NCBI GenBank assembly: GCA_964270895.1
Contig: OZ185442.1
Reading direction: 5' to 3' (one strand)
DNA length: 64,000 bases
From: Podarcis filfolensis
Lineage: Eukaryota
Part shown: positions 16,475-63,362 of the stretch, in pieces
Numbering within the stretch: the stretch's first letter is position 1
Layout of the letters: every line of letters begins with the position of its first letter
Notes under the pieces: model-generated
Told to the model about the DNA's origin: nothing
Database searches by the model: none
Seen by the model: the letters and a program-made list of their open reading frames with translations, nothing else
Position numbers and translations under genes: made by a program

Positions 16475-16526
16475 ATGAACACTGAGAAATACAGGAAGTT
16501 CCTGGATGGACTCAACAACCTGAAAG
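16475..16526 (+). CDS. MACF1: Probable MACF1 alternative first coding exon, plectin-1e-like: MNTEKYRKFLDGLNNLK|(D)
   Basis: 17 codons +1 nt with an upstream in-frame TAA at 16406-16408 and an AAG|GTACAG donor. The phase-1 join gives [11 protein letters not shown], as in plectin 1e (MDPSRAIQNEISSLK-D, recalled). Confidence 0.7.
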
Positions 16527-52018: not shown

Positions 52019-52124
52019 ATGCCCCTTTTGAATGGGACTTTCCTGCCACCCACTGTGTTCATCTTGAGTCATGTTCTTGGAGTTGCTGGGATCTTGTATT
52101 GGACGAAGAGCAGGAGGCAGGAAG
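52019..52124 (+). CDS. MACF1: MACF1 alternative first coding exon, plectin-1b-like signal-anchor N-terminus: MPLLNGTFLPPTVFILSHVLGVAGILYWTKSRRQE|(D)
   Basis: 35 codons +1 nt, A at -3 of the ATG, AAG|GTACTG donor, in frame with the 61736 exon. Closely matches my recollection of the human MACF1 N-terminus MPLLDSSYLPPTIFILTHVLGVAGVLYWKR. Confidence 0.92.
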
Positions 52125-54412: not shown

Positions 54413-56850
54413 AATTACAGAACCAGCTGATGAGCATTGCTCTGGTTTAACTAAGCCCCGAATAGCAGGATGTGATTTTGTGTCTGTGTTAGGGATGGAC
54501 AGACAGACACAGCTCAGCAGGAGGGCATCTGCTTTGCATACAAAAGGCTTCAGGTTCAATTCTTCTTAGCATTGCCAGTTATAGGGCTGGGAAAGATTCC
54601 TGCCTGAAACCCCGGAGAGCTGCTGGAAGTCAGGTGAATTGGCACAAGGCAGCTTTCTGCATCCCTATGTGTTGTCAGTCTTTTTCTTTCATCAAGTGCA
54701 TGTTTCTGGTTAGTCCATTGCTATAGAACCCATTGAGTACCTGGAGCCCAGTTACCTATCCTGTGTATCGGATCGGAACCTGACTTTCATAAGGTAGCCT
54801 TTGCGGTGTCCAGCTGCAGATCTTGTAATTGCTGGAGGCTTTGCAGCAGCCAGCAGCCTTTCTCAACCTGGTGTCCTCCAGACATTTCAGACTACAATTC
54901 CCATCAGCCCACCACATCACCATGTAGCCATGATGGCTGGGGCAGGTGGAGTTGCAATCCAAAACACCCAGTGGGCACAAGGTTGTAGAAAGCTGCTGTA
55001 AAGAATCTTCCAAAGGGCACAGCTGGGTCCGTGCTTTGCTCTGTTTGAGAAGTGCCTTTGGTTTGTTATTTTTTCCCATTGCCGTCTTTTTGTGCTGAGC
55101 TCCTCCGCTGCCCTGAGCCTCCCTCTCTGCTCCCCCTTCCGTCTGTTAGGCCAGCCCAGGTCACTGACAATAGCAGCTTTGCTGTGGCCTCTGTTCTTGG
55201 CCTTGGTCAGGAATGCCAGACGGTTGGTTGGTTATCTTCTGGATGGGCAAGGGGGGAATGTGGGCAAGGGTGGGACAGCGGGTAGCCAGCCAGTGAGGCA
55301 GCAGCGGGGGCTGCTGAGAGTTGAGCAGTCGGGTGGTAACAGGTTGCTTATCGGAAGCACTCTCTGGGAAAAGATTAAGCCGTTGAAGATAAGCTGGCAA
55401 GACCTTGATGTTGTTGGTGAGAAGGAGCAAGGGACTTATTCTTAGCTCAGTGGATAGGATAGTGTCTCTCTCTCTTTGTGTGTGTGTGTATGTTGGGGGT
55501 GGGAGGGCTAATCTCATTAGACACCAAGATCTACCCAGGAGGAATAAGGCTGGGTGACAGGCTCTTAAGGGAGGAGAAAAAGCATCGGACAGAGTACTCA
55601 TGGAGTTATTTCCTGGGTGGCAGTGAAGGAAGCCAGAAGCTGATGTTTTCTGCTGGGCCTGGTCGCTGCCAGGGTGCTTAAGTGATGCTGGAGCTTTGTG
55701 CTTAACTTGCTGGAAGTGGGGAGCACTCAGCTTGGGTCAAAGAGACTGAAGTGGAGTTATATTTAGAAGAAGAGGAAAAGGAAGATGACTGATAAGCTAG
55801 CCCCCGTTATCTCTGCCGTGGACGCTCCAAACCATTGCCCTCTTCAAATGGCGTAGTCTTCTGCTGAGCTAGTGCTTTTGCAGAGCTGAGCTCTGGAAGT
55901 TTTGGGGACTGTCTTCAGCTTGAGGATGTTTTATTTGTGAAGATGCTGCAGGCCCCCAATGAATGCAGAGAAAGAAGAACAGCCTATTGTTCTGCCTTAG
56001 TGTTTCAGTCCGTCTGGTGACTCTGGGAGTTCACATTAGAACCAGGAGGCAAACAGCCTGGAGCTGCATTGCTGAGTTCTCTTGAGAGAGGTGCTGGCTG
56101 GACCTTCTGACTCCCACATGCTGCTTGCTGCATGGAGGTGGCAACTTGGGTGTGATGGAGTTTTGGCTGGAAGTTGGGATTTTTAGAGAGAAAAAGCTGA
56201 AGAACTGGAAAATTCCTCTTCTGTTCCAAGTCCCTGAGTAGTCGTGAGTTGTCCTTTCCCAATGTGTCTTGGATTTGTACCTCTTGCTCAACCTGAAGAA
56301 GAGAATCTTTTTCTCAGTCTCTTTTCTCTCTTGAGGAGTGGTGGACCTGCTGAATGCTTTTTACATCTATCTTGACCTGATCGCCTCCTTTCTTGAGTGC
56401 AAAGGTGATGGTGGGAATAGGAAGTTTCCACCAAGGACATTGTAGTGACTGAATGAAGTGTAACCCATTCTGGGGTGCGGCAGGATATTGACCAACCTCC
56501 TTGCCGCTGCTGAATCTTCATGCACAGCTGAGGCCTATGCCTGCCTGCCCCTTTGAGGTCTGCTGATGATGTGGCTATTTTGAAATATTTGTGCTGGACC
56601 ACCGGATTATTTTTGTTTTGCTTGTGTCTCAGAGGGTTTTTGCTGTCTCTCCCCAACTATGGAAGACGTTGGCACCTTCTTGCAAAGTGAACCCCTTTCT
56701 CTTTGAAGCCTCTGAGGCTCCCTTCTTTGTGGGACTGTTTGCAGAGATGTTCTGAAGGGAGGCTCATGCGCGTGCGCGCTTTCTTTTGCTCCTGATCACG
56801 AAGGAGGAAGCTGTGGGAGGAGCTGTGGTGAGGAAGCCGGCAGCCAGGGC

Positions 56851-57031
56851 ATGGGGCTAGGAGACCACGCTGAGGATAACAGACTCCAGGGGAAACCCGG
56901 AGTTGGAAGAGCTCTCTTGCAAACCAAGGACTTGATGCCAATGGCGCTGGGCTCTGAGGGGTCCATGTGGCACATCTTCAGAGGGGAGAGGGAGCTGAAC
57001 GCCCACCTCGTGTGCAAGATGTGCTGCTTTG
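56851..57031 (+). CDS. MACF1: Probable MACF1 alternative first coding exon, plectin-1g-like: MGLGDHAEDN...SMWHIFRGERELNAHLVCKMCCF|(D)
   Basis: 60 codons +1 nt, strong Kozak context GGCATGG (alternative ATGs at 56935 and 56941), TTG|GTTAGT donor, phase 1. The last 21 aa align without gaps to the plectin 1g end WLDGGCEPARRGYLYQQLCCV (recalled). Confidence 0.65.
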
Positions 57032-58322
57032 GTTAGTACGGCCTCCTCGTTGGTTACATCTTCCTTGATGGGGGGTGGGGGGGTGGAGTGCGTGGCAGCC
57101 TCATCCTAAGCATGGCTACTCACTCATGGTTACTTCACTTGCTTCCTATAAAGTGTCCTGAGGAGTAAAGCCTGATCGTTCTGACTCATTCATGGGACAT
57201 GCCATCACCTAATATCTTTCTGTTTTCCCTTTCTTTTTTTTAATTCCAACCTTGTAGGAAGAGAATTTGGGGCATCAAAGGAAGGTTTCTGGGGGAAAGG
57301 AAAGGGGGAGCAGAAAGGGCTGTGCTAAGAGCGGAGGCAGCTGCCTTGAGCAAGAGATTTTGGCCACTGATAGAGGAGGGGTGTGGGGGGGGTACAGAAC
57401 TGATTCATAGCTGAGGCACAATTCACCAGAAAGGGGCATCCTGTGCAATGGGTGGAATTGGTGTGACTCTAGTTCACTTAAGCTCAGTGTGACTTGCACA
57501 GGAAAACTTAAAACAGAGGGTTGGGCCTTGACTTCTAATGGGCTTTGCTTTGTAACAAGGGACTATCTTTCCCACACATTTTTGTAACCATTATTTTGTT
57601 GGAGAAACGCATTGCAAAATTCAGAGAAGTGCTAATTTTAAAGGTTAGCCATGTTTCAATTCACTTGTTGTTTTGGGAAGTACAAGTTTGGGAGCTTTGC
57701 ATTAAAATGTGAACTGAACTAAATTCCTCCCCAAGTCATGTAGTAGACACAGTTGTTGTCCTCCCTCCCTCCTTCCCTCCTCAGTCTTTTCTGCTGACTG
57801 GTGAGAATATACTTTCTCCCTCTTCTGAAGCCATAACTAGACGTTGGTTAGTTGATAGAAATGCAACACTAAGTTATGGTGTGATAAGGGAAATTTAATG
57901 TAGCATGGAGATGGTTTTCTTCTGTAAAGGTACGTATTTTCTGTTCTTGGGTGGTTTTTTTGGAATGTTCTTTTTGGGAACCGCGTCCTGCAAGGATGGG
58001 GAGCCTGTGGCCCTCTAGAGACAGGCTGGACTCCAACTCCCATTAGCATGGTTAATGGTCCAGGGATGATGGGAATTGTAGTTCAGCAAAATCTGGAGGG
58101 CTGCAATGTTCACCATCCCTGACTTACATATAGTTTATATTATGTGATAATAAAGTAAACATATATTGGGGATACATATACAAAATCATTATTTATTTTT
58201 TTTAAAAAAATCGATTATATGAGTACTTAAGTGAAATAGTGAAGAGCATATGTTCCTTTATTTCCCCAACCAGTTGCCCCCCAGATGATTCAGAGCACAG
58301 TTCTCAGCAGCCTCTGCCAACA

Positions 58323-58859
58323 TGTATCATGGACTGGCTGGATGCAGAGGGAATGGTGGGAAGCACCAGCTGGGAAGAAAGCTCTGAACCTGGGGATTGG
58401 TGGTGGGATGATGAGTGGTCAGAGGAAGAAGACTGGGCAGAGGAGGTGTCAGAAGCTGAAGAGGTAACAGGGTTTTGTGAGCAGGAAGAGGCTGTGGCAC
58501 AGAGCAGTCCAGAATCAAAGGCAGAAGTGGAGGCTGGAGAGGAAGGGGGCCAAAAGGCAGAGAGGAGTCAGGCTAGTGAAGAAGCCAGGGGGTCTCCCTT
58601 TCCTGCTGCAAGCAGCTCCCCTCTTCCCAGTCTCCCAGAACCAGAAGAGGTATGAAGATGGAGGAGCAAAGATAGGCATGGTGACGGAGTCTCAGATTGC
58701 TTGGGAAGGAACTGGGGGGTGGGAAGGAGACTTAGGCAAGATCTACTGGGATGAATCGCTGTGCTCACTAGGCCTGGCCTCCTGAGTTGACCTTGTTTCC
58801 TTGAATAAAGGATTAACTTCACTGATGCTGAATGATTTATTGCGAACCTGCCACTGACA
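58323..58859 (+). mobile_element. Putative solo LTR (Gypsy-like) with a purine/Glu-codon-rich interior
   Basis: TG...CTGACA termini, AATAAA at 58804-58809, and a long internal match to 48505-48720. No TSD recognised. Confidence 0.6.
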
Positions 58860-59324
58860 CCTGCTCCCAACAGCACAGCTATCCTAGCTGGTGCTGATGG
58901 GAGTTGTAGTCCACACCATCTGGCGAGCACTTGCTTGCAGGCGAGCTGCTTTCAAAGGCCGTCACTGACCAGAGTGCAGAAGGCATTAATAAGCCAAGAC
59001 GGAAGCATTGTGAGGCAGGATTCTGGGTGTTGTTCTGCAGGTAACCTTAAGAAAATAGAAATGTTTCTGAATTCCCATGAAAATGTCAGTGCAGGTAACT
59101 CCTTCACAGCTGATTATTCAGGTATGCTGATTTTTGCCCAAATGAGAATATAGTATCAATGGGTAGAGATTTCAGGGTATTCTCCAACTAACCTGCTGGA
59201 AGTGCGTCTTCTGGGCTGGTGTCCTATCTGCAGCCACCCAATAGCAGTGCAGCTGAGTGGACAGAGAGGCATTTGGGAGCCACCAGGTCCCGATAAGATT
59301 TGGGGAGGTCTTTAACCTTACCAG

Positions 59325-59711
59325 GGACGCGGGTGGCACTGTGGTCTAAACCACTGAGCCTTGGGCTTGCCGATCAAAAGGTTGGTGGTTCGAATCCCCA
59401 CTACGGGGTGAGCTCCCATTGCTCAGTCCCAGCTCCTGCCAACCTAGCAGTTTGAAAGCACACCAAAAAGTGCAAGTAGATAAATAGGTGCCACTCCAGT
59501 GGGAAGGTAAATGGCGTTTCCTTTCGCTGCTCTGGTGTTGGTGTTCCATTGTGCCAGAAGCGGCTTAGTCATACTGGCCACATGACCCAGAAAAACTGTC
59601 TGCAGAACGGACAAAGGCCGTCTTCCTTGGCCTGTAAAGCGAGATGAGCGCCGCAACCCCAGAGTCGTTCATGACTCGACTTAACTATCAGGGGTCCCCT
59701 TTACCTTTACC
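59325..59711 (+). mobile_element. Sauria SINE, full length
   Basis: A and B boxes and an (ACCTTT)n tail. TSD TTTAA(C/T)CTTACCAG at 59311-59324 and 59712-59725. Confidence 0.92.
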
Positions 59712-60539
59712 TTTAATCTTACCAGTGCAGCCCCCTGAAAATGAAATGAGTCTTGCAGTTATGATGGGAGGAACTGGAGGCACCTTGGCTCTGTGTTTCC
59801 ACAACGTTTCATGGTGATTTTCTTGAAATAGCAAATATATTTTGAGAAGCGTTTTGTAGAACATGGGTGGCTCACCTTTGTTTGACCTGAGAGCAGCTCT
59901 CAAGGTTGGCTGACCCTCATGGTGCTCTTTGTTGAAGTGGCTGTGGCTACTCAACATGCGAATGTCAGTAATAAATAGCCCATCCCTGGAGAGTGATTAG
60001 AATGGGTTGCCCCGGGGGTAGGGGCTCCTTGCTTGCTTTTTAAATCTGCAGATGTTTAAAAATCTATACAAGGCCATTTGAGGAAAAGCCCCATTGATGT
60101 TTTGGCTAGGCCTCCGCAGAAGGAGAGTCCTTGACATGACAGCCTGTGCGCATGAATCACAATAAGTTGTGCTTGCTCCTGGATCTTGATTGCAGAGAGG
60201 CCAAAGGTCAGGGCTGGGTGAATTTGTGCTGGAGATGATAGGACTCAAAAAATAAAAAATAGAGGGGTGGGTGGGGGAGTGTGTGATGGGTTTGTTCCCC
60301 AGAATATGCAGAGTTGTGATGATTCGCACAGGGCACCAATGCCCATGGATCTTTATAGATCAGCTTAAGCAGAGAAAAATAGTAGGTCCCTTCTCAAAGT
60401 ATAAATTAGGCTTCTCCAACCTGGTACCCTCCAGATGTTTTGGATTACAACTCCCATCAGCCCCAATATAATTTAGCTGTGCTGGCTGGAACTGATGGGA
60501 GTTGTAGTCCAAAACATCTGGAATGCACCTGGTTTCATA

Positions 60540-60637
60540 AGGCTGATGGAGTCTCCTTCCTTGGAGGTTTTTAAGCAGAAGTTGGATGGCCATCTGTCAT
60601 GGATGCTTTCCTACTCTACAATTCTATCATTCTGTGA
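60540..60637 (+). mobile_element. CR1 3' fragment, internally deleted
   Basis: GGAGTCTCCTTCCTTGGAGGTTTTTAAGCAGAAGTTGGATGGCCATCTGTC followed by an ATTCTATCATTCTGTG tail. Confidence 0.8.
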
Positions 60638-61479
60638 ACTTGGGCAATGCAAGAGAGAAGAAGGGGAGGCAGGAAAGGGAATTGTTAGAGAGTAACAAGG
60701 AGTGTGTCACTTCCAGTAACCAGGCCAAGATGTGTGGTGTTTTGGCTTTTTCGGGTTTTCGTTTTAATTTTAAATTAGTCTGGAGTCTCATAATCAATGT
60801 TTGTGAGTAGCCTCACAAAAAAAGCACTGCTCATTATTGAGATTAATATGTAGCCTTTGTCCCCTTTCAGGGTCTGTTTGGGGTGTTTATGAGGGAAATA
60901 CTTATATAGCATGAATTTGCTAGTGACGATGGAGTTGGTAAACCTTGGATTTGGTGTGCGGCTTGGCTTCCTTGCTGAAGTTGCCTGGAGCTGTTTGCTC
61001 TGCAAGGGTCCTCTGGTGGTGTCCCCCACCCTACTGCACAATGTGCTCTGGGTTGATCTGGGCTGTGGGGATGGCCCTATGTTTCACACTGAAGTTGGAT
61101 TGAAAACTTGGACTCAAACGGCTTTGATTACCTCCCAAACATTGGGAGGGAGGGAGTTGGCTGGGGGAGGGAGTTGTTTGTAGCACAGAACTGGTGGGCA
61201 TCTGCTCCAAGGTGGGAAGGGTGCTGAGAGCAGAGCCATCACCCCCCACACACTGTGTGTTTTCATTTGAGATGTATGTATAGTCCAGGGTGCTTGGATT
61301 TTTTTCTTTTTTTAAAAAAGCTTCAGGTGTCCTTGGGTTGAGCTTGAGGGCCTAAAATAAATGTTAAATCCCTAAAATCCAATGAACCAAAATACAGTGA
61401 AAGAATAAGCCGCTAATTGCCTGCATTGTTTTAGGCTCTAGAAGGGTAGCTTCTTACAACCGATAAATGCGCTTGGTTT

Positions 61480-61522
61480 ATGTCGTTTATAAAACCTCTG
61501 CGCTCGGGAAAGGCAGCAAAGG
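61480..61522 (+). CDS. Candidate short alternative first exon: MSFIKPLRSGKAAK|(D)
   Basis: 14 codons +1 nt, upstream in-frame TAG at 61447-61449, AGG|GTACAG donor, 213-nt intron to the common exon. Weak Kozak context and only faint resemblance to the plectin 1a end (LAVLRASEGKK). Confidence 0.3.
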
Positions 61523-61735
61523 GTACAGGCTGAGACCCTCGTTCGAGAAAGCAACCTGTGTCTGTGTGTGCATGGTTTGGCCTCTCCCTAAGTGCCCTTA
61601 TATGCATGCATCAGCTCCGAGAAAAGGTTGTGATGCTCCTGCTTGTCACCTGCAACACGAAATGCTCTTTGTTTTTCCAGGTGACTGATTTGCTAACTTA
61701 GGCCTCTCTCTCTCTCTTTCTGCTCTTTTTAACAG

Positions 61736-61797
61736 ATGAACGGGATCGGGTCCAGAAAAAGACTTTCACCAAATGGGTGAATAAGCACCTGATGAAG
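61736..61797 (+). CDS. MACF1: MACF1 common exon, start of calponin-homology domain 1: (D)[20 protein letters not shown]
   Basis: 62-nt exon with branch-like TGCTAAC, a long pyrimidine tract, AACAG acceptor and AAG|GTAAGC donor. It is entered in phase 1. WVNKHLMK matches MACF1 rather than DST (WINQHLMK) or PLEC (WVNKHLIK). Confidence 0.97.
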
Positions 61798-61984
61798 GTA
61801 AGCACGGTGCTGTTTCTGATCTTATCACTACCAGCAGCCAGCATGGTGGGGCAGAACCACCCTTCCAACCACCCTGTTGCTGCAGTTTACCTGGGACCGG
61901 GCAAGGCACCATGGCAGTGAGGTTGGCGCTGCACAGGTACACTGGCAGAGCCAGCCACATGCTCCTGCTCTTGTGTCTGCACAG

Positions 61985-62545: not shown

Positions 62546-62635
62546 GTGCGCAAGCACATCAATGACCTCTACGAGGACCTGCGAGATGGCCACAACCTCA
62601 TCTCTCTGCTGGAGGTCCTCTCTGGTGTCAAACTG
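62546..62635 (+). CDS. MACF1: MACF1 CH1 exon: [30 protein letters not shown]
   Basis: 90 nt, phase 0/0, CCTACAG acceptor, CTG|GTGAGT donor. VRKHIND...SG[IV]KL is diagnostic of MACF1 (PLEC has AQRHISD...SGDSL, DST has VRKHVND...SGDTL). Confidence 0.97.
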
Positions 62636-63251: not shown

Positions 63252-63362
63252 CAAAAGGAATCCTCAGGGCAGAAGACCCTTCGGCTGGTGAAAGTGCCGT
63301 CCTGGTGTCGCACGAGCAGCGAAGAGTGCGAAGAGGAGGAGGATGAGGAGGATGGTGACGCA
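63252..63362 (+). CDS. MACF1: MACF1 acidic insert exon within CH1: QKESSGQKTLRLVKVPSWCRTSSEECEEEEDEEDGDA
   Basis: 111 nt, open in phase 0, TTAG acceptor, GCA|GTAGGT donor. It sits right after the ...SGVKL exon, where plakins carry the optional 3-alpha type exon ending in xRL. An internal donor CTG|GTGAAA at 63287 would give a 36-nt form. Confidence 0.8.

Follow-up and report, generated by a model that had tools for sequence, protein, structure and literature searches.

The segment 56965-57031 of the window, the 64,000-nucleotide stretch of Podarcis filfolensis DNA (contig OZ185442.1) analysed here, is very probably a genuine alternative first coding exon of MACF1, which is ancient, resembles plectin exon 1g and possibly extends 5' to position 56851 in this lizard. 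The exon would be transcribed from its own promoter, probably located just upstream, and would be spliced from a conserved weak donor (G/GTTAGT) to the common exon 2. The product would carry the isoform-specific head MWHIFRGERELNAHLVCKMCCF directly before the first helix of the calponin-homology (CH) actin-binding domain. By analogy with the first exons of plectin, this head may set the localisation of the protein or modulate its binding to actin. PLEC has about a dozen alternative first exons, and the heads encoded by them determine the localisation of the protein (PMC8468861). The features of the window are collected in Table 1.

Table 1. Positions of the exons and associated elements in the window
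Feature	Position	Strand	Remarks
1e-like first exon	16475-16526	+	17 codons, MNTEKYRKFLDGLNNLK; 100% identical to the head of a Python bivittatus protein (P0113)
1b-like hydrophobic first exon	52019-52124	+	MPLLNGTFLPPTVFILSHVLGVAGILYWTKSRRQE; matched by MPLLDGAFLPPAVFILSHVLGIAGILYWKRRTRA, the head of the CH-domain protein P0130 of Crocodylus porosus
Conserved stretch before the first ATG	56799-56850	+	in-frame ...GRSCGEEAG...; 5' leader or promoter-proximal; coding in relatives
ORF part upstream of the core	56851-56964	+	possible lineage-specific N-terminal extension, else 5' leader; ATGs 56851, 56935, 56941
Alternative first exon, conserved coding core	56965-57031	+	22 codons, MWHIFRGERELNAHLVCKMCCF, plus base 1 of the split Asp codon; based on orthologous heads and dN/dS
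5' splice site GTTAGT	57032-57037	+	T at +3; weak by position matrix; contains the in-frame TAG
G-runs, candidate intronic splicing enhancer	57070-57083	+	39-52 nt downstream of the donor
Common plakin exon 2	61736-61797	+	62 nt; good acceptor ...TTTTTAACAG/AT, then donor GTAAGC; acceptor for all alternative first exons
MACF1 exon 3	62546-62635	+	encodes 30 residues
Optional in-frame exon inside CH1	63252-63362	+	37 codons, QKESSGQKTLRLVKVPSWCRTSSEECEEEEDEEDGDA; acceptor TTGTTAG/, donor /GTAGGT; between exons 3 and 4

The open reading frame (ORF) containing the exon was analysed in the window sequence. A first-pass annotation of this DNA had described a 61-aa ORF at 56851-57036 on the plus strand, and the ORF was recovered exactly as described. 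Its C-terminal reading is ...HLVCKMCCFG followed by the stop, with TTT as the last full codon before the donor, and the stop TAG overlaps the donor G/GTTAGT at 57031/57032. The frame is open from 56716 and contains ATGs at 56851, 56935, 56941, 56965 and 57019; no out-of-frame ATG was found from 56767 to the end of the exon. The donor was scored using a rough position matrix, which gave 1.0 for this donor compared to 7.4 for the donor of exon 2. Each of the six sequences compared has runs of G downstream of the donor, between +35 and +60. Such runs are known intronic enhancers of weak donors, and those near the present donor are candidates for the same role. The number of ORFs of at least 60 aa ending at an equally good phase-1 G/GT donor was estimated by first-order Markov simulation; about 3 are expected and 7 are seen per 62 kb. 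The configuration of ORF and donor alone is within chance, and the case for an exon must therefore rest on transcripts or on conservation.

Transcript evidence was sought in four sequencing runs, two of contigs and two of raw RNA-seq reads, which were mapped to 56400-61900 and from which conserved reads may have been filtered. The two RNA-seq runs (X18 and X19, same or related species), about 12% of each being read, gave zero reads on the exon and equally zero on the constitutive exon 2. The contig runs (X1 and X5) resemble low-coverage DNA; one contig covers 56716-56949 at a depth of 2.5 and its ends do not coincide with the exon bounds. Most of the mapped reads fall in repeats at 58.0-60.6 kb. 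At the interspersed repeats of the intron (59344-59711 and 60448-60631), each of the four runs reached very high read and contig depth and showed many variant letters; these repeats are probably abundant transcribed transposon families. The expectation of about 3 ORFs with an equally weak phase-1 donor per 62 kb, together with the zero RNA reads on the exon, would be in accordance with a chance ORF abutting a GT that is neither an exon nor a functional element. The comparison with other genomes was decisive against this alternative.

The conservation of the exon was analysed using protein and DNA searches. An exhaustive phmmer search with the 60-aa translation against 1.84 billion representatives retrieved one specific relative, P0001 (79 aa, E 1.6e-12). 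This protein and the members of its cluster, P0009-P0011, are all encoded on genomic Logan contigs, L001-L004. A word search with the 60-aa ORF had given no match; P0001 and P0009 each have five or more 5-residue words in common with this ORF, which makes that result a false negative. When the window was compared by blastn with L001-L004 (1.6-5.7 kb), it aligned in no more than two places: 56799-57048, with 72-73% identity, and a short element at 55335-55449. Judged by these alignments, the exon is an island of conservation amid otherwise diverged and unalignable DNA. The alignment revealed an invariant donor ATTGGTTAGTA, conserved ATGs at 56935 and 56965 and two indels of 6 and 3 nt; the GRSCGEEAG stretch near the start of the aligned block is also kept in the protein alignment of the window with its relatives. 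The window, L001-L004, gecko (L005) and turkey (L006) all read G/GTTAGT at this site. In both gecko and turkey, exons 2 and 3 follow downstream of the exon and its donor, in the order seen in the window.

Among the last 22 codons, many differences are synonymous (AAC/AAT, CAC/CAT, CTC/CTG, TGC/TGT), and both of the Cys codons vary between TGC and TGT. Comparing the window at these codons with L001, L002, L004 and gecko contig L005 by the Nei-Gojobori method gave dN/dS values of 0.13-0.22 at dS of 0.65-0.92. The peptide of the 22-codon head is under purifying selection. The first-pass annotation had proposed a cross-species alignment for codon-type conservation, and had named frameshifts or the loss of the GT donor and the Cys pair as observations that would speak against the exon. 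The low dN/dS, the synonymous changes in the Cys codons and the indels in multiples of three are in accordance with codon-type conservation, and the donor is kept in L001-L004, gecko and turkey. As read from these alignments, the conservation is far beyond chance and decides in favour of a real exon. The chance-ORF explanation is contradicted by the conservation island, by the invariance of the donor from lizard to turkey, by the dN/dS values and by the annotation of the same head and junction in many vertebrates, so that its probability is negligible. An internal exon was also considered and was rejected, as no conserved AG or polypyrimidine tract was found upstream of 56965.

Two conserved non-coding blocks, 55120-55446 and 55707-55835, are located 1.1-1.8 kb upstream of the exon and are 75-78% identical to gecko. 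Parts of these blocks align to L002/L004 and to turkey, and several GATA-type motifs (TTATC, AGATAAG, TGATAAG) are present in them. They may represent an enhancer or promoter element for the alternative first exon. On the turkey chromosome (CM000986.2; L006 1-358) a 2595-aa gene model, whose domains include CH, spectrin repeats and plectin repeats, stops just 2.6 kb before the turkey copy of the exon, which may be due to a split gene model or an assembly artefact.

The head is also found in annotated proteins. A profile of the ORFs of the relatives retrieved UniProt entries of Laticauda (A0A8C5RWE5), Sphenodon (A0A8D0G5R0) and Chelonoidis (A0A8C0IL39), in which the head is spliced to the CH domain. 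The Sphenodon and Chelonoidis entries belong to the same 90% cluster and their heads are identical, reading MWHIYRGERELNAHLVCRMCCI followed by DERDRVQKK..., with 19 of 22 residues identical to the lizard head. Residues 1-40 of the Chelonoidis (tortoise) protein were used in a region search that admitted proteins of 70-224 aa, and this gave further carriers in Pelodiscus (XP_014426188.1), Gekko kuhli, five non-human mammals and about 14 teleosts. A match whose source names it Homo sapiens (P0109) was excluded from every comparison, and no mammalian DNA was compared. The mammalian heads, among them those of boreoeutherian MACF1 fragments, read MWPSYQDEHEFNAHLVCRMCCM, some of them being named MACF1 by the source, and the genera include Saimiri, Lynx, Castor and Lemmus. 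The teleost heads read MWPDYRNECxLNAHLYSLMCCA. More diverged heads were found in turkey and in a truncated frog model which retains only the VC-MCC end. Annotated MACF1 fragments of a snake, tuatara, turtles, gecko, turkey, mammals and teleosts start with MW..[YF]..E..LNAHL...MCCx joined directly to DERDR. No annotated lacertid model with this head was present among the retrieved proteins of 70-224 aa, and there is no Pfam family for the head.

The lizard head and these annotated heads share the length of 22 codons, the Met-Trp start, the NAHL core, the M-C-C-x end, the phase-1 junction to DERDR and the position before exon 2. The lizard head differs in F5, K18 and F22, and in the open in-frame upstream extension with extra ATGs. 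By residue pattern and junction the heads are orthologous. According to the first-pass annotation, no such MACF1 isoform is known to have been described. This stands for the papers searched, among which none dealt with the MW...MCC head or with its Cys-Cys pair; it does not stand for public annotation (UniProt/Ensembl and NCBI), where the head occurs in many vertebrates including mammals. The exon as an object is hence already known.

The splice junction and the identity of the gene were analysed further. The donor has phase 1 (TTG/GTTAGT), and the junction 57031 to 61736 is in frame, the split codon G/AT giving Asp. Exon 2 aligns to the gecko and turkey loci and encodes a (D)ERDRVQKK-type start. 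Exons 2 and 3 are of the MACF1 type, with the CH1 pattern KVRKHIN...SGVKL...FHRL...KQRQ. For the tortoise orthologue (head and CH1), the best solved structure was the MACF1 actin-binding domain (4z6g, E 5.9e-46), with plectin behind it, which identifies the gene as MACF1. An alternative first coding exon of MACF1 spliced from 57031 to 61736 had been claimed before, and the same junction is annotated in the orthologues. The stretch 61321-61735 of the intron, about 415 nt just before exon 2, is 72% conserved to gecko and is unusually long for an acceptor region; conservation to turkey covers a short part of it, 61365-61417. The optional 37-codon exon is present in several of the annotated models with the MW...MCC head. 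It splits CH1 where plectin-type models carry a short insert, which we take to be exon 3-alpha. Annotated models of gecko, softshell turtle, turkey, beaver and teleosts also contain the acidic insert that it encodes.

The annotated models leave some room for a different product. It is conceivable, though improbable, that the exon is real but is used mostly in short or truncated RNAs, be they promoter-associated, terminated early or left with a retained intron. These would yield only a mini-protein of about 100-190 aa, or nothing stable, and there would be no full-length membrane-targeted isoform. All the annotated models seen have at most 224 aa, many of them end in intron read-through after exon 4, and the named short MACF1 isoforms include Tachysurus X21 (191 aa) and Arapaima X3 (120 aa), while the Pelodiscus entry is an 'uncharacterized LOC'. 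However, the search range of 70-224 aa excludes full-length models by design, and the fact that purifying selection has acted on the peptide for more than 400 million years speaks for a translated product.

The length of the head was determined by comparing the start codons. All complete annotated models start at the Met-Trp that corresponds to the window ATG 56965, which gives a head of 22 residues. The ATG at 56851 is AAG in L001-L004, and the upstream ATG of these relatives, 63 nt further upstream, is GCT in the window. Upstream of the Met-Trp, the gecko sequence contains no ATG and is interrupted by a stop in the same frame. As ATG 56851 is not conserved and gecko has a stop and lacks an upstream ATG, the conserved head consists of 22 residues. 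The first-pass annotation had placed the exon at 56851-57031, with ATGs 56851, 56935 and 56941 as candidate starts; the annotated models and the gecko stop place the conserved start at 56965 instead. By this comparison the 60-residue version would at most be lineage-specific. Translation in this lizard from ATG 56851, giving a 60-residue head rather than a 22-residue one, nevertheless has certain points in its favour. This ATG lies in a good context (GGCATGG), the frame is open from well upstream of it, and all the ATGs from 56851 onwards are in frame. Substitutions between the window and L001 upstream of 56965 favour the third codon position (9/12/26, p = 0.0016), the indels are multiples of three, and L001-L004 also have a long open frame with an upstream ATG of their own. 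Against it stand the replacement of the ATG by AAG in the relatives and of their ATG by GCT here, the gecko sequence and the uniform start of the annotated models at Met-Trp; further, the transcription start may lie downstream of 56851. The longer head is therefore regarded as possible, with the odds against it.

The relation of the head to plectin exon 1g was analysed with retrieved proteins. Plectin-type proteins with a related head were found in Tachysurus (named 'plectin a isoform X13' by NCBI), Paramormyrops, Acipenser, Caranx, quail and elephant shark, and these show the plectin-type CH1 pattern HLMKAQRHI...SG[DE][ST]L...FHKL...KHRQ. Their heads end in ...[HY]L...[ML]CC[AV] before DERDR, with endings such as ...HLYSRMCCA, ...LLVGKMCCA, ...YLSNKLCCA and ...DLSGRMCCA, the elephant shark head being AWLTYSREEEVNAYLQGQMCCV. 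The heads were compared gap-free, anchored at the exon end, using BLOSUM62 with z values against shuffles. The lizard head scored +7 to +51 (z 2.7-6.8) against six plectin-type heads and -17 to -30 against ten that belong to other types of first exon (1a, 1b, 1c, 1e, 1f). For human plectin 1g the putative 21-mer given in the first-pass annotation was used; it scored 19 against the lizard head with 5 identities (shuffle p = 0.001). The same 21-mer scored 45 against the elephant shark plectin-type head with 9/21 residues identical, which renders it credible.

The relation to a plectin 1g-type head put forward in the first-pass annotation is thus borne out with retrieved plectin-type heads, whose scores lie above those of other first-exon types, and the presence of related heads on retrieved plectin-type proteins supports paralogy with plectin exon 1g. 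Both are short heads ending in [ML]-C-C-hydrophobic right before D-ERDR, with W, E, [HY]-L and M/L-C-C in register; plectin exon 1g belongs to another gene (PLEC) and can be aligned only over the last 10-21 residues or so. When 19 heads from the two paralogues are aligned, three positions never vary (L15, C20 and C21) and M19 hardly does. Given the paralogy with the plectin exon-1g-type head, the age of the head would be at least that of the common ancestor of jawed vertebrates.

The Cys residues of the head were compared among these sequences. The first-pass annotation had pointed to a CxxCC cluster. Most tetrapod MACF1 heads have the first Cys of this motif. The heads of gecko, Pelodiscus and most teleosts, like those of the plectin type, carry Ser or Gly in its place, and only M-C-C is invariant or nearly so. 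The conserved unit is hence M-C-C and not the cluster. In the protein with the 22-aa head, residues 18-27 read K-M-C-C-F-D-E-R-D-R, which in terms of sequence context places vicinal Cys residues among hydrophobic and charged ones. A pair of Cys residues near the N-terminus in such surroundings is a classical context for S-acylation, as in GAP-43. The di-cysteine palmitoylation of the GAP-43 type is like the MACF1 head in having vicinal Cys near the N-terminus with hydrophobic and charged flanks, and there is no sequence homology between the two. By this analogy, Met-Cys-Cys is tentatively regarded as the functional core, for which the most plausible role would be a dual S-acylation site that holds the actin-binding domain at the membrane. 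It is likewise possible, at a somewhat lower level of confidence, that the MACF1/plectin head acts as a reversible S-acylation switch which pins the first helix of CH1 to the membrane and, in doing so, sets the location of the giant linker as well as gating its binding to actin. On this switch reading, Met-Cys-Cys before the actin-binding domain would have been kept since before the split of cartilaginous and bony vertebrates.

The searched literature gave no report of palmitoylation for MACF1 or for the plectin 1g-type head, and no description of an isoform class with a conserved Met-Cys-Cys head. For MACF1, post-translational myristoylation during apoptosis has been described (PMC4200515), which does not concern the head. 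In the searched passages of a review (10.1101/122010), potential myristoylation or palmitoylation sites are mentioned for the lead sequences of dystonin alone; these constitute a precedent for lipid anchoring of a spectraplakin head, having no sequence homology to the MACF1 head. An AlphaFold2 model of the head with CH1 using 19 sequences had a mean pLDDT of 58.7, with about 50 over the head, which denotes low confidence.

The Cys pair could serve a purpose other than lipidation, namely as a metal-binding or redox-sensitive vicinal dithiol or as a contact with CH1 or a partner protein. Tetrapod MACF1 heads, apart from those of gecko, Pelodiscus, turkey and frog, retain both the His of NAHL and the additional Cys of VCxMCC, so a His/Cys3 site could form. 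However, neither of these two residues is kept in teleost MACF1 or in plectin-type heads while M-C-C is, two adjacent Cys alone make a poor metal site, and the position of the pair near the N-terminus is the one generally known for S-acylation. Such a role is considered unlikely, and S-acylation is retained as the tentative assignment.

The exon was also viewed along with the other first exons of the window. The order is 1e-like (16475), 1b-like (52019), the alternative first exon (56965) and exon 2 (61736). As the 1e-like head is identical to an annotated Python head, it is a real, annotated first exon. The Python bivittatus protein (P0113) is annotated as calmin-like and is mis-named; the 1e-like head is also close to that of a grey-seal MACF1-like isoform X2 (P0123). 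Heads similar to the 1b-like one, hydrophobic plus Arg-rich, occur in the teleost MACF1-type models P0084, P0088, P0098 and P0131. Reviews of MACF1 list six isoforms with three N-termini, which appear as a1, a2 and a3 in PMC4914211, and type 1, 2 and 3 lead sequences of spectraplakins are distinguished in a bioRxiv article (10.1101/122010). The searched passages of these two sources contain no mention of the Cys-Cys head. The present exon follows the same principle as the published N-termini a1-a3 and the spectraplakin lead types, in which alternative promoters and first exons place different leads before CH1 and CH2.

For the lizard genome the finding amounts to ordinary annotation, since an orthologue of the exon is already present in public gene sets. 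For the family, it indicates that MACF1 keeps at least one plectin-type head beyond the three N-termini of the reviews, which has been kept across jawed vertebrates by purifying selection and has an invariant Cys-Cys pair. The wider value is that it points to an unstudied and testable isoform class common to MACF1 and plectin.
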